Part shown: positions 11,667 to 41,990 of the stretch, piece after piece
Numbering within the stretch: position 1 is the stretch's first letter
How the letters are laid out: every line of letters starts with the position of its first letter
Notes under the pieces: generated by a model
Seen by the model: only the letters and a program-made list of their open reading frames with translations
Database searches by the model: none
What the model was told of the DNA's origin: nothing
Made by a program: the position numbers and the translations under genes
NCBI GenBank assembly: GCA_973895155.1
Contig: OZ316897.1
Coordinates: forward strand, 4,248,211 to 4,312,210
DNA: 64,000 nt
DNA from: Marsupella aquatica
Taxonomy: Eukaryota > Plantae > Marchantiophyta
Direction: 5' to 3'

Positions 11667-12126
11667 TGTAGGATCAAAACGGACAGTATAACGTCTCATT
11701 ATCACTCATATAGCACTCAAGTATACCGACACAAAGGTACGTGGTTCACCAAGTCAAGGCTACATCCACGGCCACACCAAGAGCTTCAAAAGTACATATC
11801 ACCATAGTGTGGGGAGAAATCAGATCAGGAAAAACACTCCAAACATACATGTGCTCTATAGTTTCGTGGTTTGCCTCAAGGTCGACTACGTCCACGGGAA
11901 GACAAAGCTTTATTAACGGTTGTCTCTACTCAAGCATCACCATAGCTTTCATCTCTTCAAGCCCTCATCTCTTGCTATATCCCTATGTTCTCTCTTGAGA
12001 ACTCTCTTGTGTGCTCTCACACCACAATAAGGATCAATCTCTTCAACTAGGGTTAGAGCAAACCCTAGTTAACATACTGACCATAGTTCAACCCAAGACT
12101 GAGTTAACCTCTACACATAGCTCCAT

Positions 12127-12165
<39 letters not shown>

Positions 12166-12310
12166 ACTAAGTGCTCTCACTCCATGGGATACAAATAGGG
12201 TTATCCCTTCATGAGAGTCTAGTCAACTAATGTTAACTCCGGTTAACTTACTCTAGTTAACCTAACCAAGATTGAGTCAAAATCCTAACAAACTCCCCCT
12301 TCCCCCTTGA
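11667..12310 (-). mobile_element. LTR (11667-12290) with adjacent polypurine tract
   Basis: TGTAGGAT...ATCCTAACA imperfect inverted ends. On the minus strand GGGGGAAGGGGGAGT directly precedes TGTTAGG. Contains a (CT)n run at ~12128-12162. Confidence 0.6.
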
Positions 12311-14179
12311 CTCTTACCTTGAGCTAGCTGCTAGCAATCTGAAGCTAAGATCTACAATGAATTGCAATGTCTTGCAAAATCACCATGGAGGATTTAACGA
12401 TGCAAGCAAACAGGAAAATAACTATTTTTCCACTTATTTAGAGGCCATGGCTTCCCTTGACAAGCCGAAATAGATATAAGCAAAAAAATCTATTTTTGAG
12501 GATTTATTTTTGCTGTTAACACAATTTTTTATCTTAGTTGTCTTGCTAAGAATATACTCACATGTTTCCTTTAAACCAAAAAAAGTTTTGTCCCCAAAAC
12601 TTTGAGAGAATTGTGCATGTTTCCCTGCATGTTTAAAGGATAATATTATTACTCGCTAATTTTGCTAGCAATAAGTTGATGAAATAGTGATTTTAGGCTC
12701 ATAAATGGATTTTTTGATTATTTGACATTGGTAGTGAGTCTCACCATCAATAGTTTGTGAAGTGTATTTTGATGAGTATTTTTTCCAATGAGGAAAGTTG
12801 GTGTGAAATAACCCTAAACTTAAGTTCGCTAGCAATGTTTTTTCTCACTGAAAATATAATTGTTTTTTCCTATTTACTATTTCTTGTTTACTCACATCCT
12901 TAAAACCCTCGATCCTCAAGCCAATCAATTTTACTCAAGTGCTCGGTAGTGAGTTTGGTCACAACGCCAAAAATGGGTTGACAATGAGAGGCCACCATAT
13001 CTAGTCCTTGTTGTGTTACTTGCAAATCAGGAACCATAGGACTGTGAGAGTTGATAGGTGCAATAAATCCTGATGTGCCCTCATAGAATTAGTCATCCGT
13101 CCTATTTCCACTCTCCAAGTTTGCCAAGTTTGTAGTCGACAAATTCTAGAGAGAGGAAAGCTTGAAATTTCAAAAATCATGCATTCAAAGAGTGAGACAA
13201 TTCTCTACACACAAAGTTAGCGCACCCAAACAAAAGCAAATAAGTTCAAATCCACACTGCACGGGCATAGCTTAAACTGGGGTAAGTCCATGTTCAGGAG
13301 GGCTACTTGCCGTCTCAAAGTTCATCCCCCTTTTGTGCATGAACAAAAAGCCAAAGTCGGCCATCATCTCGGGCAGGATTTTTGGGGGTCAAGTGTCCAA
13401 ACGCCTGTCGCAACTTGAGAACTTTGAGACATCGCCCTATTGGTGCAATCAAGGTCGCAAAATTGAAACAAATTACTCCATCTTATTGACAAGATATTTT
13501 GACAAATCCACCTTGACACCCTTCATCATTGCAAATTTGAGATTATCATTGTGATTGAAAGTTGAGACAAAAAACTCTTGCACAAGAAAAGTAGAATGTG
13601 TTATATGCCCATAGCTTTGGAGAGATGATGATGAGAGAGATGTATTTATCAAATGATGAATCAACATTTTATATAAGGTTATCTATAGGTTTGTGGTAAC
13701 CTTAGTTAGTCTAGATCTAGTTAATTCTAGTCATGTTACAATACTCTCACATGACTATATAGTGATAACTATGTAGACAATGAACTCTAGACCTACATTT
13801 GATTACCATGCTTATAGATTGCTCTTGATATAAGTACAAGTGAGGAGTATTTGTCTTGTTAAAACCTCGGGGGGTCACTCTATGAAGGGTCATACATCAC
13901 ATGCGACGGTTTGGGTCATTTATGACCCCCCTAAGTCACTTTCTATAAAGTTGTATGGCACCAATCATGTGATGACATGTATGCATTTTAAAATTAAACA
14001 ACCCTATATTTCCATAGAAGACTTAATAAGTCTTTCGCCAAAACCATTTAAATGGCCCTATACTTCGTTGCACATGATATGCCACTTCCATGAAAGTGAT
14101 CCCCCAAGGTTAAAACCTTTAGCATTTTTTGTGATGTAAAAATAACTCTATCATTATAATAGAGAAAAGAAAAAATTAT

Positions 14180-15500
14180 AGGTTCTAAAGGAAAAAGAGT
14201 AGAGTCCTGGAAATCCTCCTTGCTGAAATATCATTAGTGGTAATCATGTAGTAGTGATCATCTCCAAAAAATGTCATTGGTAGATAATAGTAGTATCAAT
14301 ATCATCAATTTATTATGTCTTGGACACCAACCATTGTAAACTCCAAAGTCCAATCACATGGCAATGTTGTTGATGAATAGTAAGAGTCAACAACTTTGTT
14401 AATATAAGAGATCGGTACGGTTGTCATCACGCGATATCTGTATCACGTTGATCTCTTTTAATTACCATGTAGTTCATGAGTGTAGAAGAACTTTGGTGCT
14501 ACATGTTTCACAAGATCACATTTCATAAATCCTCGTGTGATCTAGGTGAATACAACTTGTGTTATCCTAAAATATATTTATAGGTGTGGTTAGTATGCCA
14601 AAACCGCATTTAACTTGGATATGATTGATGAGTGAACATAACCATGATTATGGCTTCTCGACTAGCTTCATGAAGTGCAAAGATTTTTTAGTGGTTTGAG
14701 ATGTTGCAGCTAAGGTTTGTTTAACACTCAAGTTCCAAGAAAAAGTAGTACCATTGATAAGAAAAACATAACATGTTTGGGATTTAGCAATGTTAGTATC
14801 AAAAATATAACCGGCATCCGCATATCCTATAAAGTCATGATTAACATTACACGGAAAAAATAGTCTTGTATCTATATGTCCACGCAAGTAACGAAATACA
14901 AGTTTTATCCCATTCCAATGTCTGGAAGTAGGACTAGCAATATGATGTGCAAGTGAATTAACCGCAAAAGAAATATCTAGTCGAGTTTAATTTGTTAAAT
15001 ATAATTAATGCCTCAATTTCAAAAAGATCAATACGGGGTCTCCAAACTTAATATGGATTCATTCTCTAACTTTCCTTTTCCCAAAAACATCATTGTTATT
15101 GTCTAACAATCTTACAACCATTGGGGATATATGAGGGTGAGCAAGTTTTATATTTAATTGTTTAAGTATTTTCTTAGTATATGTAGTTTGGTGCAATAAG
15201 ATGTCAACAGACAATATTTCAAGTTATAAATTAATAGTGTTATCGAGATCTTTCATCTCATAAGTGTTATTAAGTACGTGTTTTTATGGTATTCTTGATT
15301 ATTGTTGGAGTACAAAAAATATTTAAATCATCAACATAGATAGCAATGATGACAAAGTCATCACCAGTATGTTTAATGAATAAACATGATGTTATAGCAT
15401 CATGGAATAAACCCATTATAATCATCTTATAAGTAAATTGTTGGTATCATATTCTGCCATTTTGTTTCAGACCATATAAGGTCTTCAACACGTGGATAGC
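14180..15500 (-). mobile_element. Ty1/copia (Bianca-like) RT-RNase H remnant
   Basis: IIAIYVDDLNI, RHWNGIKLVFRYLRG, GYADAGY, AKSQTCYVF and KHVAPKFFYTHEL, with many stops and frameshifts. Confidence 0.8.
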
Positions 15501-17014
15501 TAGTCTGTGGCGAGTATATTGTACAGTAGACATAGTGGTGTCTAAATATGTATTATTCATGTCATTAACTAAATATGATGAATTAATAATGAGTTTTTAT
15601 AAGCAATAATATGTGAAATAGCTCCTTGAACTAAAGCACGTTTGCATGCTTCTAATTTTGCTGATGCATGCATGTATTTAGTGTCCCTTAAAGGTATATT
15701 TTTGCAATATCCATTTGCCTCATTTTCAACTTGTGAAAAATGGCAAAATAAATCAAATATAGGAAAAAGATGCAATCCATTACTGGTGAGTAAGTCTTGC
15801 CATAGTGGAGACTAGGCTATTTTATAAACTCTTTTCAAACTAAATGAGCCTTGTAGCGGACTTCTTGGTGGATTGCAAGATCGAGGGGTCCAAAAGGACG
15901 TAGAAAAAATGTCATTGGTAGAAAAGTAGTGCTCCACCTTAACCTTGTCTCCTTGGCCTTGGTTTTGTACTAGCACACTTTTTCAAGCTTCAACAAAGAT
16001 TACACTCTAGCATGGACTCTTCTCTTGCTCTCATACACTTCAAATGCACTCACACTTAATGGTCACAATAAAAATTGGCAAGTCTTCTTTTATTGCATCA
16101 TCTTTACAATAAAAGTTCACTACACATTCTCCACACTAAGCATGGATCATCTCTCCCTTCTCAAGCTTAGCCCTACCTTGGCAAGGTAGAGATTCTACTT
16201 AAGAGATGAGATTCCACTTAAGAAATAAAAACTATCTCCTTTTATACTATTCTCTTTCCACATCACACCAAGCTTGACTTGGGGTCCAACTATACCTCCC
16301 CCAAATCCTCCTAACACACAAAGTCCAACTTTATGGTTCATAGCCCACCCTACTACTTGTTATTTTGCCTCCTTCCAAGCCCTGGAATATGCCACACATG
16401 ATTTACATGCTTTGACCTCCAAATCTGCTTCCACTTATAGTCCTCCTCACCAGATTTCCAACCCACTTGAAAGCTTGCAAAGAGAGTGAGTGAGTCTCAA
16501 GTTATACCTAGTCAAAGTTGACCTTATTTTATTTGTAACCCTTTTACTACCCTAAGTAAACTACCCCACCCTTGACCAAAGGTAAGTACCCTTCCCTAGA
16601 GCCTAACTAAAGTGGTATGGGTGAGAGAAAGGTCTCTTCAAATTTGGTCTTCATTCGCCTATGTCGGCTCCGGTTTGCAAGCTATCGGGACCCCTCCTGG
16701 CCTTGGCTAAAAACATATTTTGGTGATTTTTTCTCTGGATTTACACCTTCACCAAGGGGTGCCTTACCTTCTCTTAACTCAGCACAAAAATATTTGGGCC
16801 CCAACGGATATCCCTAGCCAAAGTTATGTCCATTCTCCCAAGGCCTATTTTTGGTGTAAAGCGGGTGTAAGCGGCGACCCAATTATACTTACTCTTTACA
16901 CGCCCCTTATGGAGATTCCAGGTGTCACCAGGGCCACGATTCTCATAAGGACCATATTTCTTATCATTTAGGGTTGAGTTTACTAAGGAGATGACCCGTT
17001 TCTTCTCACAGCAG

Positions 17015-21707: not shown

Positions 21708-22457
21708 TGTCGCGAGGACTAGAAGTTGGGGGCTCCTCAGGTAACCTGCGCATTTCTGGCTACGACTGGGACAAGCGACAAGCACTTTTCGGAGTGAACT
21801 CTCACTCCTTTTTTCTACTTTTCTCTCAATGGTTACAATGGGTGCCCTCGAGTAAGCTTGCCTGCAAGAGTCTGATAGCTGGCCCTACGGCGGGCCGCTA
21901 CCTCTAACTTGTCGAGCTGAACTCCTCGAGTGGCTATCTACTCAAAATCTGACAGAAAAACTCTCCTCCTTAGCTCACAAAAGCAAAACTTGACTAGCTA
22001 CTCGACTAGTCCTAACAGCTCACAAGAAACTCAAGCCTGGACCAACAAGGCTCCAAGCTCGAGAACCAACACCGGATCCAACACTCGCACAAAATACCAA
22101 AATCGCCGCACAATAGTTGAATTCCGTAGAACGCAATGGAACTCATAGAACGGAACACACTAGAACTCAATAGACAATCACCAACCTCAATGAGCCAAGG
22201 CTCAAGTCTTAAATAGTATCCAAAAACCAACCTTCTAGCCTGAGCCAACTGCCATCAGCGAGGCTCATCCAAACTCCAAGCCTGGTGACTCACCCAAACA
22301 CCGAACCTGGTGACGACGAGTCACCCAAACATCAAACCTCAATCCATCCAACCAAGCAACCCCTCCGAGTTAGCATGCATGCAATTGAACAAGGACGCTG
22401 CATTGCCCATCATCCCCTATAAAAGCCAATCCTCGAGCCAAAATCTTTGGCACGACA
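21708..22457 (-). repeat. 3' LTR of Ty3/gypsy element 1
   Basis: TGTCGCG...CACGACA inverted ends. The minus-strand PPT GGGGGAGGA (22458-22466) abuts the LTR. Confidence 0.85.
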
Positions 22458-25400
22458 TCCTCCCCCAATAAACCTGAGCAGCCTCCGGTCTGCTCCAATC
22501 CATCAGATTTCCTCTAAGTCTCAGTCTGAACTTGAGCCATGTGCCTGGACCACTTCCTCCTCAAGAAACTCAAAACCAAAGCCTTCAGACTCAGCCTTAG
22601 GCACTCCACTTTCCAAAAACTCAAAATCCAACTCATCCGAATCAGAACCAGTCAAGACCCTTTCGAAACTCAAGTCCATCGGATGCGCCTAGACCAATGC
22701 CTCGTCTTCAAATTCACTCAAGTCGAAACTTGAGTCCATTCCCTTCTTGATCCTCCTCTTGAAGATCTTCACCCTCTTCCCTGCGTAAGGTACTTGGTGA
22801 ACCGTTCCATCCAACTCCCGAATAGTATAGGTTGCATTTGCATGAACATCAACCACCACATACGGACCTTGCCACCTCCGAGAAAACTTGTTTCGGCTCA
22901 AGTGTTGCTCGTCCAACTTACTCTTGTAATCAGAACCCAATCCCCTTCCTTAACCAAGACAGGCCTCAACCGATGAATCCTGTCAAACCTGCCCTTGTTC
23001 CTTAACCTCGCCATCTTCAGTTGCTTCCAAGCCACCTCAATATTTGCAGGTAACAAGTTGAAGTGTTCGATCCTTCAAACCAGCAACCCCTCTCTCGAAA
23101 CTTCATCTTTCCAACCAATCAGTCGCCAGCTACAAACATCTTCCTCCAATGCCATCATCGGCAAGTGCCCAGTAAGTAGCTCAGCCAAAACGTATCCGGT
23201 CACTGAGCTACAAGTCATCCAATTTGCTAACAGAGCAAGTGGAAGAAGACTCAACAACTTGCCCAAGTCCCCATCACAAGCCCTAGCCAAAGCGCTCACA
23301 ATCTGAATATGCCCCCTTTCGGATTTCCCATTGCCTTCCGGATTGTAACGCGAAGTCGGCTTCAGTTTGATATGGTATTGGTAAAAAAACTCTTGCGCTT
23401 CTTTGGAGCTGAGCTCCCCCCTATCAGCCCTGATCCTTGTAAAGCATCCATGCCTTGCAATGATGTCCTCAAGTATAAGCCGGCAAATGGCAGCAGTAGT
23501 GTTCGAAGCCAATGCTCTCCCTTCCACATAAGAAGACAAGTCTTCTCTTGCCAAAACCAAGTACCTCGCCCCATTGCTCTCTCTCGGCATGTACATCACA
23601 TCAACAGCCCATTAAAAGTGTAGAGCCACGGGGTAAGTCAGAACCAATCCATCCCTATGTTGGATCCTCGAGTAAAACTGGCAAATCTCGCAAGTCTCGA
23701 CATAGTCTCGAACGGCCAAGTATAAACCTGGCCACCAGTACAGCTTCCGAACCCTCTCATAAGTCAAATGCACCCCTTTGTGCCCAGCCATGTCAGCATC
23801 ATGGCACTCTTTGAGAATTCAATCTTTCTCATCCTTAGTATCCACAACCCTCTGTAACAATTGACTTGGGTCCTTATGCCTTCGCCACAAGTAGCCCTCC
23901 CTCAATAGGAAATTGTAAGATCTCTTCTGGATCTTGACAAACTCTTGGTACCTCCACTCTAGTTGCTTCTCCAAAGTGCTAATGTAACGCCCGATATCCA
24001 GCAACTCTCCCGAGTAGAGTTCTTCCTTGAACTCTAGACTTCCAACGCTTTCGGTTCCGGTCACCTCGCCAACTCTCGTCGCTACCTGGTTTCCAAATTT
24101 TGCCCTTGACAGCATGTCGGCAACCGGATTATCCTTTCCCGCAATGTGACTTAGCTCAGGGTTGAACATCCGAATGAAAGCGATCCACCTGAGCATTGCT
24201 ATGTTAGGCATGTCACAATTCGCGATCATTCCCAGCAGCGATTGGCAATCAGTCTTAACCACCACCGGCGCCCAATCATATAGTTCCTCCCCTGATGGAG
24301 TGCCACTTTGGCACCCAAAGCTCCCTCTTAACTTGGGCATATCTCCTTTGCCTTTCCGTAAAAAAATTTGCCTCAAATCTGATAGCATACCTTTCCCCAT
24401 TCTCGTCATCTTGCCCAACAGCCCACCTGGCTGCGAATGGACTCGCATCAACAGTCATGATCAGTGGTCACCCACTCTCATAGTCCGCAGCTTGGAGAAC
24501 TGACGGGCTCATGAGAGTGCTCTTAAGCTTGGCCATTGCTTCACTATGCTCGGGTAATCATCTCCACTTAACCTTCTTTCTCAATAGCTCATAAAGCGGG
24601 TCCGCCAGGTGCGAGAAGTGAGGGATCCAGATCTTGTAAAAGACACAAGCACCCAAAAACCTCCAAACTTTTGGCACCGATTCACAATCCTTCATCTCGC
24701 TAATAGCTCTCACCTTGTCCATGTTCGGCTTCCTTCCATAAGATTTGCACATTTGCCCAACGACTTTCACCTCTTTCATCCCAAATTCAGACTTCGCCCC
24801 CAAAAGAGTGACTCCCACATCAATCAGCTTCTTGAGAACCGCCTTAACATCAGTAATGTGATCCCACACAAACTGTCGGATCTCATCACTCCTCAAAGTC
24901 TCATCCTTCCCTTCAGCCAAGCAACCCTTAATCGGGACATCATCAATGAACGGCCTCGCCTTTTTCGGAATGAACGGCTCCAAGATTTTACTCATTGTAT
25001 TTTGCATGTGCGCTACCAAGTTTGTCGCCCCTTGAGAAAGAGTGCACATCCTCAAGAGGCCCATCGGGGTCCTCATAGTCGTAATGTCTCGGCTCTCTTG
25101 TGCCAACTAGAACTGGTCGTAACCCAAAAACAAATCACCCATGGAATAGATCACCCTCCCAACGAACTCCTCCGCAAACTCATCCACGAGTCCCACATTC
25201 CTAATGGTCACCTTATTCGGAGGTTGCATATCCTGAATGAACCTCAAATTTCCATTTTCTTCCTCACTATAAACCATCTGTTTGGGTAGGGAGTATCAGA
25301 CCTCTCAAAAATCCTAGCACTCAGTTTCTCCTTAAGTAGTTCCACAAGCTTTGGAGCCAAAGCCCACGGAACGGAAATCGGTTTCAGATCCCACAAAATA

Positions 25401-26289
25401 TGAGGGACAGTAAAGATGACCATCGGTGTCACCTTACTCGGATCCGCACAACCAATTGCCTCAATCAAAAACAAGAATGCCTTACCATGCTCCATTATCA
25501 TTTTCCGAAATGCTACTTGCTCCACCTCCGTAAGTAACCCATCCGAACCAATCTTAAGCTTTGCCAAACTCTCTGGAGTAAATTTATGCCCTATCCGATC
25601 AGTTGGCCTCAGCCTCGGTTCCAATCTCGCTCGATCCATAACCTCTATCGCATCATCCGGCAAAGGTATCACCGTCGACCTCACCTTCTTGTCGACCGTC
25701 TTGTATTTGGTACTCGAGTATAAAAGCACAATCATAGACGAGTACTGCCTTTCCAATTCTTCCTCCAGCTTGTCCCTTCCCAAGTTAGACTCCGCACATT
25801 TGAGTGGCTCATCCTCTCCATTATCCATCGTATTTTCCCTTTCACAAGGAGCTAAGGAACGAGCACTCCACCGGTCCACTCTTTTCAGCAAAGTGCCATG
25901 TTGTTTTCCAGGACCTGGACCAGAGTCGGCACTCTCAATCCTCAACCCCTTTCTATTCCTCTCGTTCCCAGGTAAAATAGCCGGAAATTGAACCACTTCT
26001 TTCCCATCTTTGCTTCAAACCTTCACCATGAAGGTAGTATCGTCCAGAACCTTCGCCTCCATCCTCCATTCAATAATGAACGACATGCCCAATATCACCG
26101 GAAATGACAAGTGCTCGTGAACAAAAATGTTACAAGCCTGCTGACATTCTCGAACTTCACCGTCACATTTGGACATCTGCCCCAAAGATAGTCCTTCATC
26201 AAACTCACCGAGTTCACACTCCAAAGCAACTCATTGTCCACCGGCCAATTCCCCTTTTGAAACACCTTTGGATCCATCAAGTTGACTTT
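21708..26289 (-). mobile_element. 5'-truncated, degenerate Ty3/gypsy LTR retrotransposon (protease-RT-RNase H-integrase-LTR)
   Basis: Protease tail (NLMDP..FPVILGMSF), RT (RPFIDDVPIKG), RNase H (TVDASP, KTDCQSL, DNPVADMLSR), integrase (LAREDLSSYVEG, RADRGE, NGKSERGH) and WQGPY. The gag and 5' LTR are missing. Confidence 0.9.
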
Positions 26290-28137
26290 GTAGCCAAGCT
26301 GTGTTGTGACAACTTTGGATACTTTAGACCACGAGTCTGAAAATGTACTAGCTCCTCATTAGGCAACCCATGCATGTCGGCAATTTTATGGACTAAGACC
26401 TCCTTCTTGAGGGTTGAGTATCCTCTCACTCCCTGTGCTTTCAACCAATCTTGCAACCTCTTAGTAGTAATTGCTTGGAGCTAGGAACGAGACATGGCAA
26501 CATCGATGTCAATAGTAACAGTGTATATGACACTCAACATCTTATCCACAAACTTTTTGACCAGGTTCTTTGCCTTATGTCACAAGTCTTTTTGGTTCCT
26601 AATCCCCATATCCTTCACAATATTATTGATAGTGGCTTTATCATCATGAATGACCTCGATGATAGATATCCCTACCTCTCTCAAGCTATCTAATGCCTTT
26701 TTGGTACCCCTGTCCTCCATATACCAGGCATTTCCCTCCTCCCTCCTCAGAATTGTGACCATGTCAATTACTCTGTTATTCTCAATGTTGAAAATAGATG
26801 TGGTACCATGAAAACCGCTCCTAGATGAATCCCATCGGGTATCTAAATAAACTACTAATCCAGGATCTGTCATAAACCAAAGAAAGTAGACAATGTAAGG
26901 AACATCAACCTGGTCAAGCCAAAAGTCATTGAGCCTCAAGTACCATAACAAAACTCATCACTAACCTGTCTCAGTCGTCCACCTCCGATCAATTAATGTT
27001 GTCTTTCAACTCCTCCCACATGCGTCTTTTACTTTGAACCCACTCTTTTTTGACAACTGCTATCCATCCACCTCGTGGTCGCCCATGGCCACTTTGAAAG
27101 TCATGCCAATGAGCCGCTGTAGGGACATGTAATCCTAGATGTGAGGCAACAATAGCCAAGAAGGTGTAAGTAAGACCAGAGCAAAGGGTGGAATGGTACA
27201 ACCTAGGTGTAATCATAGGAGAACTCCTCCCAGGCCATGTATATGCCACCGAGGGAGTAGCCGATCAACAAATATACCCAACAACTCACGATCAAAGAAC
27301 AATACTCTAGCTGGCATACGGGATGTTGCTCTATGAGTAGACTGTGGGTCCAAAGGTCCTATAGACTGAGAGTCAAGAATATTAGATGGCCCAGTTCTGG
27401 CCAATGGAGATGGTGTTGGGTTTGCCTCTTGCAATGGTCCGGTAGGCTGGGAGTCTGGCACATTGAATGCCTCCTGACAGAAGAACCCCACAAATGCATG
27501 TTAGACATTGTGTAATTTGTAGTCCAAGTCAATTTGGCATTAAGACGCAAGAGTCATACCCCCGTTTCCTCATCCACAATGTCATTTGCTCCCAAAGCTG
27601 TAAGAGCATCTGTGTCGTGACATATAGTATCATAGCCATAGTGTATCAAAAACATACAAGGCACCGACAATGCACATATGCAAGCTGCTAGCAACCAACA
27701 TGCATAGAAAAAATCCCATCACATTTACAAGTGCCAAGAAAAAGCAAATGAAGTGGTATGTACATAGTGGAGGTGTAAACCTCTGTATATAAAAGGCGTA
27801 AAAGAAAAAATTGTACTAAAATCAAATCAAAACCCGACGGGATGCCAAGATCGGCCAAGAGCATCTAACGAATCACTGTGTGAATCCCGTGTACAGAACT
27901 GACGAGCACTGTTTGAGCTCTGTCAATAGCGATTCAAGAAGAACTGAAAAAACAAAGAAAGACATGCCCTAAGCAAGCAAAGTCCTGGCGTCACACTAAC
28001 AAGCGCATTTTCTTCAAGAACATCTAGAATTTGCTATAAGAACATGTTGTTAACTCAACTAGTACACTAGCCTCAACTACATACCTAGCGGGCATGCGAG
28101 GGACATGTCGATGTGCACAAGAGGCACTGTCCCTTAG

Positions 28138-28496
28138 GAGGTATTTACAAACGACAGCAAACAACAAACAGTAACAGCAAACAGAAACCGGTAACAGGAA
28201 ACAGAAACTGTTAACAAACAAATGAGTGGTAATTTTTTTAGAAATTTTTAGAAATTTTTTTTGGATTTTTTTTTTTGCTGAAATTGTTTTTTGCCAACGC
28301 CCGGCGCTGGTAATGCTAGCGCCCAAAGCTAGCCAAAAATTGTTTTTATTTAATTTTTTTTGGAAAATGTGACTTTTTTGAAAATATTTTTTGATTGTCA
28401 TTTTTCTTGGTAATAGTAACTTTTTGCTTGTAACAAGAAAATTTTTGCTGGTACCAGGAAACCTGTTTCCTATTTTCTGTCACGGGTGCCATACCC
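28138..28496. mobile_element. Small non-autonomous insertion (MULE-like MITE) inside repeat A2
   Basis: Absent from A1. Flanked by GTCCCTTAG / GTCCCTTGG, with imperfect inverted ends (GAGGTAT..GACAG..AAACAG vs GGGTAT..GACAG..AAACAG). Confidence 0.6.
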
Positions 28497-28514
28497 GTCC
28501 CTTGGCATGACAAC

Positions 28515-28690
28515 TGTCGTGACATATAGTATCGTAGCCATAGTGTATCAAAAACATACAAGGCACCAACAATGCACATATGCAAGCTGCTAGCAACCAA
28601 CATGCATAGAAAAAGTCCCATCACATTTACAAGTGCCAAGAAAAAGCAAATGAAGTGGTATGTACGTAGTTGAGGTGTAAACCTCTATAT
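28515..28690 (-). repeat. Split direct repeat B1 (partner B2 at 27613-27790)
   Basis: About 176 bp with roughly 6 differences by eye. On the minus strand it is preceded by the purine-rich GGGGGGATATAGAGG. Confidence 0.9.
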
Positions 28691-28728
28691 CCCCCCAGAC
28701 CACAACCAAAAGGAGGGCTGAAGAATAT

Positions 28729-28881
28729 TCAGGTAGCACGTGGAGCACAACAAGGGCAAAACCATAACCCTTTTGGCACCTGGGTAAGTTCAGGCCAAAG
28801 GCAAAAAAGATGGTACCCTCCATTGCAATTGTCACACAACAGCATCTGGTCAACATCATCAATTCGCAAGTACACTTTGCA
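28729..28881 (-). other. PHD finger at the C-terminus of the integrase
   Basis: CKVYLRIDDVDQMLLCDNCNGGYHLFCLWPELTQVPKGLWFCPCC* is C4HC3 with the second Cys changed to Tyr; it is one frameshift from the integrase frame. Confidence 0.9.
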
Positions 28882-31800
28882 TGGGAATTCACAGGTGGGA
28901 TCCAAGTAGAAGTGACAATGGTGGGATCCAGGTTAGGCAGATGACAAGGGGCGCAATTCTTGGCATTGTCAACAATTGTGCGCCCATCTGCCCCTTGTAA
29001 CTTTAGCACTCTAGATGGTCGAATAGCCTTAACCCTGAGAATAGTATGACTGGTAGAGGTGTCCAGGGTGTCATTAGCTTGCCGCTGCAAATACACAAAA
29101 TCTCCCACTTCAAACTTCCTGACCTTGGGCTGAAAAGTGCCCCACATGTGTGTGCATAACGCAGTGTGTCCCTGTGCTGTGCAATGGCCAAACTCTCCAT
29201 GGCCATGGGCATAACCCTCCTGAATAGGGCAGCTCTCTCAAAGATCACATCAGACCAAGTTACAACTAAATCCAAGTCCACCACCTGAAGCATGTGAGCA
29301 GCAATAGCAGAAGGTGGAACTTGGTGACGACAAAACAACAAAAAGTAGGGAGAAAAGTTAGACAGTGATGCATGTCTAGACATCCTATACCCCATGGCAA
29401 TGTACGGTAAGGCCAGGTCCCAATCCTCCTTGTTTTTGGTGAGGCAAATCTTTCGGAGACCCTTCTTGCATGTCTGAACCATGCGCTCTGCCAAGCCATG
29501 TGCTTGTGGGTGATCTTGTGATGTCTAATGATGATCAATGAGGGCCTGATCAAGTAGCTCCTGGAACTCTCCTCTGAACTCTGATCCTTGGTCAATGAGA
29601 CATTTTGCACAAGCTCCAAAGCGGCTGAGAACTTGTTGAAGAAATGGCTTGGCTGGTGCTATGGGAGGTCTTATCCGGCAATGCCACAAGTTCTATCCAC
29701 TTAGAGAAATGCTCTATCATGATCATGATGTAGAGATTACCCCAAGATGTGAGGGGTAATTCTCCAGCCAAATCACATGACCAACGATAAAACATGCCCT
29801 GAATAGGGAGTGGATGAAGTGTGGGTTGTCGAGATGTGAAAGAAGTCCTTACCCTATCACACTGCTCACACCGGGCAATAACATCTCAAACCTGGTCATG
29901 CATGCCTCTCCAATGATAATGGGGAACCAAGAGGCTGTAAGTCCTCTTAACGCCAAAATGACCAAGCTCATAATGTACCTTACAGATAAGGCCAACCCTC
30001 TCATGAATGGGTGGAACCACCACTTCCTTGTCTGGCAAGCAGCGCACGGGATGATCTCCCTTCCACAAGTAACGCTTGGACCTCTGTTGAATTTGGTCTC
30101 TTTGGGCTGCAGTGACATGTGTGGGGTATTCTCCATGCTACAGAAATCTTAGAGTATCGTTGTCCTCTCATGTCCACCACGGGTGGGTCAACAACGTAGC
30201 ATGGTAGCAAAGCAAGATAGGTAGATGCATGAAATGTAGGCAAGATGGAACCCTAGTCAAACTCCTGCCGTGCATCTAAGGAATCATTAGAGGTAATCAA
30301 AGGGCTGCGAGACATAGTGTCAGCATTCTAATGTATCACACCAGACCTATGAATTACCTCAAAGTCATACTCCTGGAGTAAGAGTGCCCAACGATCAAGC
30401 TTGCCAGTAAGCTTGTCGTTAGTCATCAACCACTTCAAGGGCTAGTGGTCTGTGTAGAGATTAAACCTGGTCCCGTAGAGGTAGGGCCTGTAATGTATGA
30501 CAGCCCACACAATAGCAAGGCATTCACCCTCATAAAAAGAATAATGACTGTCTGTCTGATTGTTGCTCCTGGATGCATAGACAATGATGTATTCCTTACC
30601 TTCCTCATCATGCTGGCCCAGAATGGCACCAATCCCACGGGCACTGCAATCTATGAGTAGCACAAAGACCTTGCTGAAATCAGGTCTTCTCAACACAAGG
30701 TATTCTAAGAGCTTCTCCTTCAAAGTGGCAAATGCTGCCTCAACATCTGTACTCTATGTCCAAGTCACATTCTTTTTCAACAAAGAGTACAATGGGTGTG
30801 CAATGGTACTAAAATCTTTGATGTAGTCCGGTAATAATTGCACAACTCAATAAAGCACCTAAGAGTGTGAACATCAGTAGGAGTGGGCATCTCCAAGATG
30901 GATATCACCTTGGCCCAGTGAGCCATGGTTCCATTTGGAAGAATGCGATGCCCAAGATATACTACTGATTTGACAGCAAATTCATACTTCTTGGGGTGTA
31001 TCTTTAGGTTCACTTTCTTAAGCCTCATGAATAGCTCCTCAAGGTCAAGTAGATGCTGGTCAAATCCTTGTTATGGACCAACACATCATCAATGTAGCAT
31101 TTCAGAAACTCAGCACCTTGAAGAACCTGGTCCATGACTCTTTGAAAGAATATGGGTGCATTCTTCAAGCCAAATGGCATCACTAATCACTCCCATAGTT
31201 GGTTACTACCATGGAAAGTTGTTTTCTTGTGATCCTTTGTAAGCAGCAAAATCTGGTTAAAAGCCTTGCCTTAGATCCACAAGAGTGAAGATGTCTGAGT
31301 CTCCAATGCTATCAAATAGCTCCTTTGGCCGTGGCATGGGGTATCTGTCCTGGGGTGTGACCAGGTTCAGTGGCCTGTAGTCCCCACACATGCGCTTCTC
31401 TGTCCATAATCCATTGGAATCCTTCTTTGTTGGCATCACTATAGCTGCTGCAAAAACTGATGATGGCTGAATAAGACCAGCTTCATAGAGCTCTTGGCAC
31501 CTCTCATCCACCAGCTGCCACTCATGCTTACTCAAACGGTGTCTCCGCCTAAAGATAGGTGTTTCATCAGCCAACACAATGGAGAACTGCATAGTCTTGC
31601 ACTTACCCAAGTCCTTCATAGAGAAAGCAACACGCTAGATCATGCTTGAGGAGCAAATTCAGCAGCTGGTCCTTCTATCTTTTACTCAAGTGGTTGTCCA
31701 TGATGAATGTGTAGTTGGCAACACTAGGAATCGGACCTGATGTACTTGTGCTTGAAGAACCACAAGTGCTAGCCTCTTCACTGTCCAAGCTACTAGCATG

Positions 31801-32069
31801 CTGCTGATAAGGTGATGAGGCCTCTCCAAGGCCAGTTGTATATGTTGCTGTGGTCTGATCCACACCATGAAACTCAGAAATAATGTCAGCCACATTACAA
31901 GGGACCTCCTCCCCCCCAACACGGGCTGAAGCGGTGAGTGTTGAATAGAGGTAAGTGCACCTAGTCTGGATGCCATGTAATAGCACCATGGAGTGGTAGG
32001 GCTGGAACTCCTGATACTGGATGAATCATGTACATCTGAAAAAGGATGCAAGTGACCAGAAGCCAAATG

Positions 32070-33000
32070 AGAGCATTAAGATCCATCACCCTGCCAAGTA
32101 AAGCATTCTTGGCCAGCCTGGTGATTTTGGTGTGGCCTCTAGTATCGGGTTGGAAGCCCATAGCCCGTACTCTCTCCTCAAGACTAGGTTCATCCCATGT
32201 ACCGGTAGAATGTTGATAAACCAAGCTAGGACCATCACCTTGAAAAGCATGTGCACCTGGAAAGGACACAAATGTAGGCCAAGCAGCACGGGGCTCTCTA
32301 ACGGTATTGGTTGGATACCAAGGGGCTGGTTCTTGCCGTGTAACTGGTTGGCAAGAACTATCAAGATCCAAAATTTGGTCCACTGTGAGGTTAGTGTCCA
32401 CTGGATGTGTGGTGAAGAGCTAACTCCAGCAAGGAAGGTGGTGCAAGGTTAGTCCAAAAGTTACAAAGACGATGTGCATAAGAACCATAATGCACTGCAT
32501 CAATGAGAAGGGGTGGTCCCAAGTAGTGTTGGACCACACTGAAATCCTCTTTGACCTGTGGACGCTGTTCAAACTAAGATGGAGTATTCTCAATGATATA
32601 ACCAATAGCAAGGTAAAGGGATTGAGCCCAGATAAGAACCTAAACCAATGCTGTGAAAAGGCCAGAACGAGAATCATGCAGTCCAGCACCGTGACCAGCA
32701 GCTGAAAACCCTTGGCATTCCCAACCAGCTATGATTAAATCAAGGGAGCCAAGAAGGGTTAAGTGTCGGTGCTGGACAAGCTGGATATCTGGGGGAAAGA
32801 AAGAAAATGTAGACTTCCATGCTTTGTGTGGAAACTGCTGGGAAAATTGTTCTGAAAATTCCAGCAGATGGGATTCAGCCACTTGCCTTGCACCTGGATC
32901 AATGTCCACGTAGATGTACTATTTTACCACCATGCCGGACTGTAGGAGAGCTTCCAGGCCTGTAGAAATGCCACCAAAAAGCTCAAGCAATGTAAGGTCA
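32070..33000 (-). pseudogene. Retroelement-encoded C5 cytosine DNA methyltransferase domain (DNMT3-like), disrupted
   Basis: Motif I LLELFGGISTG, II YVDID, III PDI, IV DLIIAGWECQGFS, V LHDSRSGLF, VI IIEN, VIII DAVHYGSYAHRLCNFWTNL, IX EERVRAMGF, X KNALLGRVMD. Stops at 32919, 32640 and ~32575, and a frameshift near 32400. Confidence 0.9.
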
Positions 33001-36000
33001 TCCGGAGTAGGAATCCATGTAACTGGTGCACTCAAGATTGGAGTTGTTGGCTGTCCATTGTGCTGCCCAAGGTCTTCAAACTTGCGCAATGCAACCACCA
33101 AAGGTCCATGGGCTGCTTGGAGCCGTTGTACCACCTCTGGTTGATGATCCACGTTGCTAGAAAGTGCTGCTATATATGCAACAACATGTGTAGCAGCCAC
33201 CTCATTGTCATCCTCCTCAATCCAATCCTGCAATGGATGGTTGACGTAGGTAGCTGTGTGCACTTCTTTCAACACATAATGGTGAGCCATGGGTGTATGG
33301 GCACCATGTAGATCAAGGGGAATATAGCCCAAGTGCGAGCTATCAGTATGCCAATCAACTCTGTAGTATGCATGCTCATGCCAATTGTCAATGGTGAAAC
33401 CTGGTGAGAACAAAGCCTCATGATCAATGGAGCACATTATACGTAGTGGCATTAATTTTGTAACCAAACATCTGACTGGGAAATGAAGTTCCTGATCTGT
33501 ACCTCCATTAAAAGTGAGGGTGAGTAAAGTAGAACTCTCACCCAACACGTCCTCCACAGTGCCACTAGCAGTCCGAATGTGCCACCTGGATTGCTGTAAA
33601 TGATCAGTCAATAGTCCCATCTTCTTGGCAAACTGAATGCCCAAGATCACTGGTTGAGTGTCTGTGTCTAGCATGACCACTTGAGGAGTGTGACCCTCCA
33701 ACTTGACCGCTGAATTCCTGTTGTCAACAATGACAATGGTGGTGGAAACTGAAGTCCTGTTACTAGGCACCACTTTTGGCAAATGATGAGGTATTTTGTG
33801 AAGGGAGTTAGTATCCACGGTCTTCCCACTCAACAGTATAGTCAAGAAAGATGGTCCCATAACCAGAATCAAGTGTGGCTCTAGTCACACAATCTGCAGC
33901 AATACTGTCATCTCTACCACTGGAAATTGGTACTTGGATAGCCAAACCAGTGGAAGCATGTAATGGAGAAGAAGGTCCAGTATGTATATGAGATTGGACC
34001 TCCAAAACCGGTGTCACAGGGGCTGATGATGAATATAGTGAGCCCTCTAGCGCTCTGATGATAGCTCTAGCATCCAGTTGTAAATCATGGCAACTGAAAA
34101 GTGGAGTTGTAAGAATCCTTTGTGCCATACTGGAGATGAAATGCTCAAACAACTGAGGAGAAACAACTCCCTGTGAAATGTCAGCAACACCCGGTGGTGG
34201 AATGGATGTAGTTGTAGCTCCCTCCCACCTCGCCAACAAGGTGCGCTCTTTAGCAAGCATGAGTGGCTGAAAAGATTGGGGTATAACAGCCCAAGCTCAT
34301 TTGGCTCTAGTCATAGGACCGGCAGCAAGACCATTAGCCTGTACAATGCGGCATGTGGGAGCAATATGGGAGGCAGCATTGGCCTGCTAGTAAGCAAAAT
34401 AGGATGGGCAGAATGAATCTGAAAATTCTGCTGTAAGACCAGGCTGTATAGCAGAGGACAACAAACACTCACCCATATGAGCATCAAATGGCAAGCCATA
34501 GAAAGAGCGGGGTAGAGGTGCTAAACTATCAGTGGTGCCTGGGCCAGGGATGAGTTGCACGTGACCAGCCGGTTGAGAAGGACCAGTAGAGGTAGTTGAC
34601 TTGCCTTTGATGTTGGCAAGTTGGGCACGTAAGGATTCAACCTCATGAGTTAGAGATTGAAGTTGAGTTGCCTGTGTGTTGTGAGCCTCCTTTTGAGCTG
34701 GTTGCTTCTGTTGCAGCTTGGGCGATTTGTTGGCACCACGTGCTTTGCCACTGGAAGGAGGAGCAACTGAGGCAATAGGAGCCCTCCTAGCTGGTGGGGG
34801 AGTGGAAGCAGGAGCAAGATGAGTGGCTTGCTGTTGTAGCTACTTTCTCTCTGGGAATTTGGCAAAATAAACTACCTCCAAGTGGCCCTCTTTCTCGCAA
34901 AAATCACAAGACAGATCCTCAGTAACAATGTCACATTCATTAGCCTTGTGATTAGGGTTACCACAGTAGTTGCAAGATGGCAGCATGTGCTGGCTTGGTC
35001 TTGGAATAATACTGTGGCACAAAAAAAAGATGGCTAGTGTAGGGGCAACAGCCTGGTACCTAGATTACGGTGGATGCGCAATACTGGCCTCATAATGTGC
35101 ATGGGCCAACTCAAGTTTCTCAGCAGTATCATAGACATTGAGCAATGTGTAGCTGTCTCCAAACTCTAAGAATACTTGTTGCAACACTTGCAAATAGAGA
35201 GCTGTGTGCCTTTCAATGCACGAAGATAGCGATGAGCAGCCTCCAAGTCTGTGATGCTCTGAGTGTCCTACTTCAACTTGAGAAGCCAACAATATATCAT
35301 CTTCAATGTTTCATCGCGTTGTCTCACAAAGGTGGCCAACTGCATGATTTTGTCAGCACTCTTGATTGGAAATTCCAATTCAAGAACTTGGAAAAACTCA
35401 GCCACTGGATCAACAAAGGCAGGGGAATCAATGGTGGGAGAAATGCCTGATGTAGCTTGTGCCAAGATAGTGAAAGTAATTGGTGCAGTGGTAGGAACTA
35501 GAGTAGGAGGGGAAGTGGTAGGAGCAGTAGCATGGGCTGCAATGGCATTCTGTAATGCCAGTTGTGAGGCAACCGCAATTGCACTAGCATAGACAAGGTT
35601 AGGCAATTGCGTGACAGCAACCAGCCATTGAGAATGCTGCTCATACACATCCAAAGCCTCATGGTGCACATACTCGACTAGCTGCTTAAATGCAAATGCA
35701 TTTGTGAAATTGCTGCCGTACTTCAAATCCAATTTGTAAATGACAGTAGAAAGTGGATTTGAACTCACGCAAAGAAATAGTGCTTGGCCGCCCGCTGAAA
35801 CGCTCAATGCGACCAGATGAGTGGCTGGCATCCATGCTGTATGTCGGTGAAGCAGGGACAACCACTGATGGAGAAGGAGTAAAGGGCAAAGAAGCAATAG
35901 CAGGCTTTGGGGTAGTGGTATGGGTGTTGCTACTATCTGTTGACGTCGTCAAAATTTTTGAGACTCCAATGAAATTGGCACCAACGGTCGTGGATCACTC

Positions 36001-37807
36001 CGCAAGTGGTACTTGGGTGTCGGTGGTGATGAGCTGCTACGACTCGGCTCCTCTGTTGACATGGTGCATGCTCACCTGGGGTGCCGATGGGAAAGAAACT
36101 GACAAGAAAAAGAAATGGCAGCCCCAAGGCTAGGAAATGAAATCCACAAAGGAAACAAACAATGCGAGGCAAAAATGTGTAGAATGTGTAAGCACCAAGA
36201 AACCGTCAAAGTCTATGCAGATGACATGTGGCGACAACAAAGAAATCCGGAAGAATGGGCCCTTGAAAACGTGAATAGGGGCCCCCCTTAAGTGTATACA
36301 CATCGGACCTAAATTGCCCCCGTTGTGTATACATATCGCGCGTCAGAATAAGCGACCGAGTGGGGACCGGCGCACACGGCCCTATGCAGAGTGTTGCCCC
36401 GTGTAGGTTGCGCAGTGAATGGCGACCATGGCCGGTAAAAGAAAAGTCGATCGGAAGTAGGTCACAGCCAGAAAGAAGTAGGTCACGGCCCGAAGGAAGT
36501 CACAATTGGGAAAAATGTTGGAATGGAGTCGTGGGGAGTGCACGCGGCCCTATGCACTTCCGTATGTGTATACACAGGGGAGCGGGTGGCAGGGAGAAAG
36601 ACAATGACAAAAAAGGGAGGACCAGGCACAAATGACAAGGCAAAAAGAAAACAAAAAAGGTGAGGCAAGCAAAAAGAAACTGGCCCCTTAATGGGGTCGA
36701 GCCCTGCATAGGGCTTTGCACCCCCCCTTGCAAGCTTCCAAAGAGGAGCTATGAGCCCCCTCCCCTCTTTTAATGATTCCTTTTGGGCCTCATGCCCTGG
36801 CAGGAGGACTCCCGTGAGATGGGAGTCAAATCTCTCCCCACTCTCCTGCTTTAAATGCCCTCCTTGAATGCCTGGCAAAAGGACTCTTGAGGGAAGGAGT
36901 CGTATGTACTCCCTCCTCTTAATGCATCATAGGGCCTTGTGCCCCCTCCTTGCACTCATGCCTTGGCTGGGGGTGAAAATCTACTCTTGAGAGAAGGGAG
37001 TCGCTCCCCCTTTCCTCTTAATGTTGTATAGGGCTTTGTGCTTTTTCCTGGCACTTGCTTCCCCCTCCCTTTTTTAATTTGCCATAGGGCCTCGTGCCCT
37101 CCATCTCGTCCCGCTAGCTTGTGCTCGGCCACAGGCAAAATCTGGCAACGGTAGGAAACTAGCAGCGGCAGGAAAAGAGGAAAGAAAAATGTCAAGGCTG
37201 GCAAGGCAAAAAGGAGAACAAGGGGCAAAAGAAAATGGGCACGCAGCCCTATGCAGTCAGAAGGTGATTGCGCGGTGGCCGAGGCGAGCGAGCGAGCCTA
37301 GGTAAGGCGCAGTGGCAGAGGTTGCGGCTGCAATCGGAAAGTAAAACTTTGGCCCCTTGTTGCCTATGTGTATACACATGCATTGCCGCAAGCCGTCGGA
37401 AAGGGCGCACGGCCTTATGCATTCAAGAGGCCAGCAAACACCAAAAAATGGCCCAAATAAGCACCGAAAAAGGTCATGGATGGGTTGCGACAGTCGGCAG
37501 TCGATACAGCAATCGACAGCTTATAGGTTGCGGCCAGTAAAGAAAAACTTGGGCTGCTGAAAACACAAAACCTCCCGGAAATGAGAAGCGCTCCCCTTGT
37601 CTCCTCCTGGGTGTACTGCGCCAGTCCGAGAGTTTAAGTGTATACACATAAATGATGTGTATCCAAAGAAAAATCTAACTCTAACCCCATCGCCTGATTT
37701 TTCTTCAAGAAATTCCACTAGCTTTGACAAAAATTGTCTAAACCGACATGAGTAGCTGAGAAGCACAACGTCTCCAATCTTCTTCCCTTCACCAGAGTTC
37801 TTCTTGA

Positions 37808-38201
37808 ATAAAAGGTGCAAGAGAAACAATCGTACTGAAATTGAATCAAAAACTGGTGGGATGCTCCCGGCCGATCTTGGCACTTGGCATCCCACCAGTT
37901 TTCGATTCAAGTGGGAGCAAAGTTCGCTTGCTTAGGGCATGTCTTTCTTTGTTGGTTTTTAGTTTTTCTTGAATGGCTGTTGACAGAGCTCAGACAGTGC
38001 TCATAAGTTCCGGACACGGGATTCAAGTGGGAGCAAAGTCCTGGCGTCACACTAACAAGCACGTTTGCTTCAAGAACGTTTGGAATTTGCTATAAGAACA
38101 TGTCGTTAACTCAAGTAGTACACTAGCCCTAACTACAATACCTAGCGGGCATGCGAGGGACATGCCGATGTGCACAAGAGACACTATCCCTCGGCATGAC
38201 A
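37808..38201 (-). repeat. Split direct repeat A1 (partner A2 at 27789-28512)
   Basis: 38030-38201 aligns with 27975-28135 plus 28497-28512, and 37808-37864 aligns with 27789-27845. The middle part is inverted between copies. Confidence 0.85.
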
Positions 38202-38479
38202 TCTGGGCCATCATCTCGATAATGTGCTTCATTTCCTGCATCTGATGCATATTGCTCAACAATAGGCTCCTCAGGGTCAACATCAAATTCAAGATCTAAA
38301 TCCAATGCAGTCTCGCATGCAACCTACAAATTACAAAAAATAGATAAAACCCTAAACAATAATATATAGTGTATAAAGAATGATGGTAAAAGCAATCATA
38401 CTAATAATTATGAATAAAAGAGTATAGAAACCAGAGTACTTAGACCAGAATACCATATTTTAATTTTATTCATATATCT

Positions 38480-39035
38480 GGTTGTGAGTAGTCTGGGTAA
38501 ACTTTACAAGAAAAAATCCAAACCCTAACCAATAGTTTTGCATGCAAAAGAAATAAATATTACAAGAATTTTTGGCAAAACAAAAACCCGAAGCAATAGT
38601 TTTATATTTAGGAAGGTAGGTTTATATTTTGTTTTGTCATTATTGGATGTGAGTAATATGAGGTAAATTTACAGAAATGAACAGAAACCCTAAGCAATAG
38701 TTTTGCATCTAAAACAACATAAACCTAGTAGTTAGATCCTATGAACATTTAGGAAAGTAAATTCATAATTATTTTTGTCATTATTGGATGTGAGTAGTAT
38801 GAGATAAATTTACAGGAATGAACAGAAACTCTAAGCAATAATTTTGCATCTAAAACAACATAAACCTAGTAGTTAGACCCTAGGAATATTTAGGAAGGTA
38901 AGTCTATATTTTATTTTGTCAGTATTGGATGTGAGTAGTATGAGGCAAATTTACAGGAATGAACAAAAGCCCTAAGCAATAATTGTGCATGTAAAACAAA
39001 ATGAACCTAGTATAACTTACATCCTAAACATTTAG
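38480..39035. repeat. 141-bp tandem repeat, about 3 copies plus a degenerate one
   Basis: TTTTGTCA(T/G)TATTGGATGTGAGTA recurs at ~38632, 38773 and 38914. Confidence 0.85.
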
Positions 39036-40739: not shown

Positions 40740-41110
40740 AAACTCCCCAACCAAACTCTCTATACTCAACCCTACAACACACCACTCCCAAACTCCAAAC
40801 TGTCCCACCCAACTCTCACAAACCTCACAAACCACCCCAACCCCTAACACACCCCCACCACAATCAACCCTGTAACACACCACTCTCAAACTCCAAACTG
40901 TTTCGTCCAACTCCCACAAACCCCACCACCTCAAACCCCTATGTACCCTCAACCCCCACCACTCTCAACTCTGCAACACACCACTCCCAAACTCCAAACT
41001 TGCCCAACTCCCAACACACCACTCCCCAACCAAACCTCTCAAATCCCTCAACACACCATTCCCCCACTCGCCAACCAAAATCCCCAACCAACTCTCCACC
41101 CTCAACCCTC
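40740..41110. repeat. C/A-rich degenerate tandem repeats (ACACCACTCCCAAACTCCAAACT, ~97-bp spacing)
   Basis: The motif recurs at ~40779, 40877 and 40977. Confidence 0.6.
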
Positions 41111-41319: not shown

Positions 41320-41990
41320 GGATATTTTCCCCTCAACATCTTTTTCTCACCTCAAGATCTTTTCTCATCTAGCTTCACATCTTTTTCTCACATTGACACC
41401 TTTTCTCACCTAGACACCTTATCTTTTCTCATTTCCTCACTTTTTTTCTCACCTTGACATCTTTATTTCATCATAATATCTTTCCCTCATCCTCAATATA
41501 TTTTCTTTCATCAACATCTTTTTTAATCTCAACATCTTTCTCTCACTTCAACATCTTTTGAACATTCAATGCATAGGCATTGGGCTTGATGCTTGACATC
41601 TTGCCCTCTCCTCGACATCTTTCCCTCTCCTTAATATCTAGCCCTCACATTGACATCTTGCCCTCACCTCGACATCTTGCCCTCAACTCGACATCTTTGC
41701 CTCACCTCAACATGTTGCCCTTGCCTTGATATTTTTTTGTCTCCTCGAAATCTGTCGCTCTCCTTCACATCTTGCCCTCTCCTAGACATCTCGCCCTCTC
41801 TTCAACATGTTGCCCTCGCCTTGAAATCTTGCCCTCATCTTGACATCTTGCCCGTGCCTCAAAATCTTTCCGTCAGCTTGGCATCTTGCCCTCATCTGAG
41901 TGACATCTTTTCCTCTCTCCTAGACATCTTGTCCTCTTTTGGACATCTTGTCATCACCTTGAAACCTTGCTATCACCTCAAAATCTTTTG
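41320..41990. repeat. Degenerate ~20-bp minisatellite (consensus ~CTTGACATCTTGCCCTCTC)
   Basis: GACATCTT-type cores are spaced every ~20 bp across the interval. Confidence 0.85.

Follow-up and report, generated by a model that had tools for sequence, protein, structure and literature searches.

The 64-kb window analysed here (64,000 nt of the Marsupella aquatica contig OZ316897.1; "the window" always means this whole stretch) carries on its minus strand, at 27613-38201, a 10.6-kb retroelement whose terminal repeats are split. A segment A1 is followed by broken genes for gag, protease (PR), DNA methyltransferase (DNMT), reverse transcriptase (RT), RNase H (RH), integrase (IN) and a PHD finger, then by a G-run, a segment B1, the dinucleotide GT and second copies of both segments, A2 and B2 (Table 1). 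The element is a single old, dead insertion of a green-plant lineage of Ty3/gypsy type, and a decayed liverwort member of a kind that has already been reported, Gypsy-DNMT3 with DIRS-like repeats. This layout has been published but not explained; the new points are the complementarity of the primer site, the position of the G-run, the palindrome, the evidence from the A2/B2 joint and a testable model. We consider it probable that the long terminal repeat (LTR) produced by reverse transcription in this lineage is B-nn-A, where nn stands for 2 nt, that the integrase sites lie inside this unit, and that insertion needs cDNA whose ends have been joined and which is opened at the palindrome.

The repeats were delimited by comparing 27000-38800 with itself. 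B2 matched B1 at 96.6% identity over 176 nt (E 2e-80), and positions 27976-28134 of A2 matched 38032-38191 of A1 at 91% identity over 160 nt (E 1e-59). On the sense strand the element runs from TGTCATG to CACGACA, with TGTCATGCC at its start (38201) and ...GTCACGACA at its end (27613), and TCTG stands on both flanks as a 4-bp target-site duplication (TSD). The self-comparison and the reading of the flanks thus bore out the order A1-ORFs-B1-A2-B2 (ORFs, open reading frames), its coordinates and its TSD as they had been given in an earlier reading of the letters alone, called the original prediction below. That reading was equally right that no B follows A1, which passes directly into unique sequence, and that the purine tract precedes B1, which is abutted by the G-run GGTCTGGGGGG. 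A1 and A2 are not simple copies of each other: about 100 nt of A1 (37923-38025) are inverted relative to A2 (27881-27981), with a 20-nt direct repeat at the two borders of the inverted stretch (37904-37923 and 38020-38039), and A2 holds an insertion of 361 nt. Both changes are private to the window copy, because A1 and A2 are 99.3% identical in a young copy from the liverwort Calypogeia fissa. The inversion flips the orientation of the proposed self-primer site of A1; the insertion is A-rich, has inverted similarity near its ends and resembles a small non-autonomous DNA transposon. The 64-kb window holds no second copy of the element, and no tRNA genes or Rfam families were found in it. The claim that removal of the element restores a host reading frame is faintly suggested by a frame of 58 aa that crosses the empty site without a stop, although another frame is open at that point as well.

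Table 1. Coordinates of the element, its repeats and its coding remnants in the window (minus is the sense strand of the element)
Feature	Positions	Strand	Remarks
TSD TCTG, 3' side of the element	27609..27612	.	
B2, terminal B copy, ends ...CACGACA (right integrase end)	27613..27788	-	96.6% to B1
A2, starts TGTCATGCC; TTTTATATA at the A2/B2 joint	27789..28512	-	
AGTTCTTCTTGAAT in A2, perfect complement of the post-A1 site; proposed RNA 5' end and self-primer	27932..27945	-	14-nt match, 0/2000 shuffles
361-nt later insertion in A2, foreign to the element; 7-bp duplication AAGGGAC 28129-28135 / 28497-28503	28136..28496	.	compared with A1
GT spacer, B1 end to A2 start; centre of the palindromic junction	28513..28514	-	
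B1	28515..28690	-	
GGTCTGGGGGG, polypurine-tract-like G-run adjoining B1	28691..28701	-	
PHD finger, C-terminal end of the polyprotein	28732..28932	-	PF00628, E 3e-9
Integrase, Integrase_H2C2 + rve, several frames; D, D and E motifs still legible	29006..30137	-	
RNase H	30445..30753	-	PF17919, E 2e-27
Reverse transcriptase, broken	30780..31634	-	PF00078
C5 cytosine DNA methyltransferase fragment	32643..32918	-	PF00145, E 4e-6
Protease region, longest stop-free piece, 321 aa	32922..33884	-	
gag zinc knuckle	34843..35064	-	PF00098
ATTCAAGAAGAACT at the A1/internal boundary; proposed self-priming primer-binding site	37796..37809	-	
A1, starts TGTCATGCC (left integrase end); 37923-38025 inverted relative to A2	37810..38201	-	
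TSD TCTG, 5' side of the element	38202..38205	.	

The same layout was found in other genomes. Sequences related to the 321-aa protease piece occur in C. fissa, Sphagnum species and many metagenome contigs from peat moss. At C. fissa L003 the young copy consists of A1 from 6287, the internal region, GGTCTGGGGGGGG, B1 to 16194, GC, A2 from 16197 and B2 to 16805; it is flanked by CACC on both sides, its B1 and B2 are 100% identical, its ORFs are long and its integrase retains D, D and E. Scanning of the metagenome contigs with an integrase-end/PHD peptide gave 80 Sphagnum-like loci, reduced to 64 independent ones. PHD, G-run, B, nn, A and B follow one another in 22 of these 64, and in the remaining 42 PHD, G-run and B run into unrelated flank without A2-B2, which is also how the S. 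magellanicum locus L004 ends. Two Sphagnum-like A..B-A-B copies are complete, one with the TSD ATGT (L052) and one without a TSD (L027). The complete A..B copies number eight, with a perfect 4-bp TSD in six (CCAA, TATT, TTTT, CATG, CACA and TTTA), a duplication with one mismatch in the seventh and none in the eighth. The expectation that every copy is A...B-A-B within a TSD therefore held for the young C. fissa copy and, as to order, for the 22 loci, and did not hold for the 42 loci that end at B or for L027, where the TSD is missing. A solo A/B unit, which had also been looked for, occurs once, in C. fissa L093 at 11932-12497 (393 + 173 nt, perfect TSD TACC), inside another copy of the family. 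No copy was found in which A.B is followed by a primer site, so relatives with two full A.B LTRs, which the original prediction had named as evidence against itself, did not appear. The layout is not a product of rearrangement, tandem insertion or misassembly, because the same order with 4-bp TSDs is present in C. fissa and in the Sphagnum-like copies. The order A, internal region, G-run, B, 2 nt, A, B is the invariable competent integrated form of the lineage. The C. fissa sequences L001 and L092 are scrambled or duplicated fragments without usable ends, and L002 and L090 were left out as too short or too distant. At L086 (2334-5516) two partial elements stand in tandem, both ending PHD-B-nn-A-B.

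The coding region of the window copy is interrupted in dozens of places, and its broken ORFs were searched with Pfam as separate stop-free pieces. These pieces carry a zinc knuckle, an aspartic protease, a C5 DNA methyltransferase, RT, RNase H, the zinc and core domains of integrase and a PHD finger; the methyltransferase and the PHD finger had been overlooked in the original prediction. No window piece matched a tyrosine recombinase (PF00589), and neither did the nearly intact C. fissa copy. The RT-RH-IN region came out nearest to Ty3 Gag-Pol (best solved-structure match, E 3e-46), and in the alignment of the intact C. fissa integrase its D, D and E fall on those of the Ty3 and prototype foamy virus (PFV) integrases. 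The best solved-structure matches of the C. fissa DNMT (PF00145) are DNMT3B, DNMT3C and DNMT3A, all weak. The pol order protease-RT-RNase H-integrase, with gypsy-type RT_RNaseH and Integrase_H2C2, is that of Ty3/gypsy elements (Metaviridae), as are the DDE integrase, the TG..CA ends and the 4-bp TSD, all three of which had been correctly read in the window copy. The two complete, identical LTRs of that group are absent: the 5' end consists of A only, and B occurs twice on the 3' side only. The primer site and the polypurine tract are present in modified form, as a self-complementary site at A1 and a G-run at B1. With the DIRS order the element shares the split repeats A1..B1A2B2; it differs in having a TSD and no tyrosine recombinase.

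The positions of the priming signals indicate which unit is duplicated. The window, C. fissa, all Sphagnum-like copies and the distant relative L091 share a G-run next to B1, and the sequence that precedes the run is not conserved. This conserved G-run at B1 therefore points to the start of B as the start of plus-strand DNA. At the A1/internal boundary, 13-15 nt form a perfect complement to a stretch lying 117-157 nt upstream of the A end (boundary sequences ATTCAAGAAGAACT in the window, ACTGAAGAAAGACT in C. fissa and AATTCTAGAAAAACT in the Sphagnum-like L027), a length reached by at most 1 of 2000 shuffles. The pairing starts at an identical AGT in the window, C. fissa and Sphagnum-like copies, and at least four paired positions change on both sides between these three lineages. 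As judged from the letters, such covarying complementarity fits self-priming of the Tf1 type, and a covarying complement directly after A1 would therefore place the start of minus-strand DNA at the end of A. No tRNA-type primer site is present at the A1/internal boundary; the candidate TGGTGAAGGG, 15 nt after A1, was rejected as not conserved in C. fissa or the Sphagnum-like copies. The suggestion that this element may do without a tRNA primer thus agrees with both the missing tRNA-type site and the covarying self-complementary site, and the distinct mode of replication proposed with it is one that we still infer. The treatment of A.B as the equivalent of an LTR finds no support; the primer sites point to B-nn-A. 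In L005 the sequence TATAAAA lies 34 nt upstream of the self-primer site. A self-primer search in L091 gave two 11-nt candidates, about the chance level.

The two other signals are the palindrome and the A2/B2 joint. The end of B and the start of A together form a conserved palindrome (ACA-GC-TGT), and ...CACGACA-GC/GT-TGTCATG... is kept from liverwort to L091. Its spacer is GC or a transition derivative in all lineages, namely GT in the window, GC in C. fissa and GC, AC, GT or AT in the Sphagnum-like copies. At the A2/B2 joint 1, 2, 3 or 5 extra nt are present if the count starts from the U5 end, taken as the base immediately preceding the primer site; the added letters repeat the beginning of that site (A, AA, AAT, AATTC+A). 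The joint varies among close relatives, and variable primer-site prefixes therefore fit end joining after imprecise primer removal in each cycle, not inheritance. No priming site adjoining the start of A or the end of B was found. Just inside the left integrase end there is a CATGCC...GGCATG stem with arms about 40 nt apart (window 38150-38198, L003 6290-6340, L005 6538-6586); because it is invariant, it gives no evidence for or against a structure. The distant relative L091 (GCA_027488445.1; 649-5370 and 5400-5620) retains the palindrome CATGACA-GC-TGTCATGCC, a G8 run and a B about 190 nt long, and its DNMT is placed between RNase H and integrase instead of ahead of RT.

In the model that we propose, the RNA would begin within A1 and end within A2. 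The G-run immediately preceding B would be where plus-strand DNA starts, and minus-strand DNA would start directly after A1, primed in Tf1-like manner by the 5' end of the element's own RNA in A. The unit duplicated by reverse transcription would be B-nn-A, because the G-run marks where B starts and the primer site where A ends. Both integrase sites (TGTCATG... and ...CACGACA) would stand back to back, 2 nt apart, in a palindrome in the middle of this unit, and the natural cDNA ends, which are the end of A and the start of B, would not be integrase substrates. A competent copy would arise when the cDNA ends are joined, in a two-LTR circle or its equivalent, and integrase then opens one palindrome. 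The product would be a circularly permuted insertion with a 4-bp TSD, and its A2/B2 joint would be the junction of the natural cDNA ends. What we infer is where the transcript ends lie, that the cDNA passes through a joined or circular intermediate and that integrase cleaves at the junction. A precedent for the last of them is that retroviral integrases cut palindromic LTR-LTR junctions internally (PMC1180852, PMC1905944).

The A-internal-B copies fit by-products of such integration. They could form when both palindromes of one linear cDNA are cut, or the single palindrome of a one-LTR circle. An A-internal-B copy should be a dead end, because it is without a 3' A for strand transfer. Copies of this form are interspersed among the A..B-A-B copies on the tree and are therefore not a separately replicating lineage; on these two grounds A-internal-B was rejected as a replicating form. 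Their share is 62-75% in every age quartile and about two thirds overall. A wider proposal is put forward tentatively, and we would not lean on it as firmly as on the B-nn-A unit itself: the lineage may have moved its integrase sites from the LTR ends to an internal palindrome, so that end-joined cDNA became obligatory, a strategy like that of insertion sequence (IS) circle junctions was combined with Tf1-like self-priming, and dead-end A-internal-B and solo A/B copies became routine.

Several observations weigh against the model. A symmetric two-LTR circle predicts the mirror product A-B-nn-A-internal-B, and none was seen: B-nn lies upstream in 0 of 14 A units that are followed by the primer site, an absence with p of about 0.003 if both products formed equally often. 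The A-internal-B copies may equally derive from early recombination between B1 and B2, and the absence of an age trend is weak evidence against this, because recombination would take place mostly while the repeats are still identical. The joint varies within an AT-rich run in which slippage could occur. Upstream of the proposed RNA start a clear TATA is missing from the liverwort copies, and all the Sphagnum-like copies are old (B1/B2 87-96% identical). To our knowledge, cleavage at an internal junction has not been reported for any Ty3/gypsy integrase.

Of the other explanations, a route like that of Ngaro and PAT-like elements survives best, although we regard it as unlikely. The RNA would reach from inside A1 into B2, B1-nn-A2 would serve only as template for the outer ends, the joint would be inherited, and the DDE integrase would insert full-length A..B-A-B DNA. 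Such a route requires no extra assumption for the absence of the mirror order, and the repeat order is identical to that of Ngaro/PAT and SymbioDIRS elements (PMC5890265). It is at odds with the G-run at B1 and the covarying site at A1, which mark the start of B and the end of A as cDNA ends; an inherited joint would not vary by primer-site prefixes among close relatives, and no priming site that could serve it was found beside the start of A or the end of B. A circle-free route seems somewhat more doubtful again. Here integrase would cut one palindrome of a linear cDNA with B-nn-A LTRs and insert the large fragment and the small B fragment, and host end-joining would seal the end of A to the start of B; in a variant, a template jump of the plus strand would extend the right end only. 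The primer-site bases at the joint and the TSDs are explained by this route, and extension of the right end only would give A..B-A-B, A..B and solo A/B without the mirror form, as observed. Against it, cutting of the other palindrome would again yield the mirror form.

It is very improbable that the window holds an ordinary Ty3/gypsy element with A.B LTRs whose arrangement here goes back to loss of the 5' B together with a tandem LTR, to a tandem insertion or to an assembly error. A.B does have TG..CA ends, and the window copy is decayed, with an inversion and an insertion, but the exact order, boundaries and TSDs recur in another liverwort and at 22 Sphagnum-like loci, and the primer sites lie at the A1 and B1 boundaries, with no copy showing A.B and then a primer site. 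A tyrosine-recombinase element of DIRS order that merely adjoins gypsy-like genes is suggested by the repeat layout alone and is contradicted by an RT-RH-IN region nearest to Ty3 Gag-Pol, by the 4-bp TSDs and by the lack of any PF00589 match in the window pieces and the C. fissa copy.

The combination of split repeats with a DDE integrase had been thought unrecognised, which was not borne out: KnitGypsy-Dnmt3 of Klebsormidium nitens is already described in the legend of Fig. 4c of de Mendoza et al. 2018 as having "DIRS-like repeats, Gypsy domains" (PMC5890265). Compared by description only, the two share a gypsy-type pol, a Dnmt3-like C5 methyltransferase in the polyprotein and DIRS-like repeats (PMC5890265). 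The host here is a leafy liverwort, and primer sites, TSDs and a mechanism do not figure in the available text of that paper (PMC5890265). A 2026 preprint mentions "Gypsy-DNMT3" of streptophytes, and no explanation of a layout of the KnitGypsy-Dnmt3 type was found in the literature searched. Ngaro, PAT-like and SymbioDIRS elements have the same split direct repeats A1-internal-B1-A2-B2 but encode a tyrosine recombinase and make no TSD, whereas the present element has a DDE integrase, TG..CA ends, a 4-bp TSD, a G-run and a self-complementary site. In bacterial insertion sequences of the IS3 and IS30 types, a circle junction with abutted ends 2-3 bp apart is cut by a DDE transposase. The likeness lies in the abutted inverted ends, the 2-nt spacer and the proposed substrate of a DDE enzyme; those are DNA transposons without reverse transcription, and the analogy is mechanistic only. 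Tf1/sushi elements and plant Tcn1 resemble the present lineage in having no tRNA-type site, with a post-U5 site that complements an upstream stretch of the same repeat, the proposed RNA 5' end (PMC6317226). They differ in their ordinary LTRs and chromodomain, whereas the present lineage has a PHD finger and a permuted layout, and its RNA start is a predicted one. Among plant lineages, Tcn1 (gypsy) and TAR (copia) are predicted to prime themselves (PMC6317226). The two-LTR junctions of PFV and human immunodeficiency virus type 1 (HIV-1) are alike in that a retroviral-type integrase cuts a CA-nn..-TG palindrome internally (PMC1180852, PMC1905944). Their junction comes from joined LTR ends and is a side route, whereas in the present lineage the palindrome is encoded in the repeat unit and its cleavage would be the main route.

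Textbook LTR retroelements integrate as linear cDNA with integrase sites at its ends, and circles are considered dead ends. In the lineage described here, priming sites and integrase sites are out of register, and if the model is true, joined or circular cDNA would be a productive intermediate for a eukaryotic integrase. The lineage ranges over liverworts, metagenomic Sphagnum-like DNA and the distant relative L091 and, judged from the literature, may extend to Klebsormidium. Because of the layout, LTR-finding software will miss or mis-split such elements in bryophyte genomes. Direct tests could make use of the young C. fissa copy, and the element-borne Dnmt3-like and PHD domains are relevant to the epigenetic conflict between transposons and their hosts.

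Other observations concern the surroundings. Pieces of one sequence, 68-806 nt long, recur in C. fissa L003, L001, L092 and L093 at 99-100% identity and in both orientations, and four such pieces sit within the L003 element, which is young in other respects (8082-8297, 11756-12557, 13606-13673 and 15486-15639). A scan of viral contigs for the junction pattern gave a single chance match, in the GC-rich phage contig L009. In the window, an unrelated second decayed retroelement occupies about 22000-26500 on the minus strand (rve 23078-23599, RVT_1 24561-25106); it has a strong negative GC skew, and no LTR pair was detected for it. Tandem arrays lie near the element at 38606-39012, 40764-41000 and 41592-41988, with 141-nt units repeated 2.9 times, 98-nt units repeated 2.4 times and C-rich units of 19/57 nt. 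An uninterrupted ORF of 457 aa at 1941-3311 (plus strand) encodes a circularly permuted GTPase of the LSG1 type, 85% identical to that of C. fissa and 60% to that of Marchantia.

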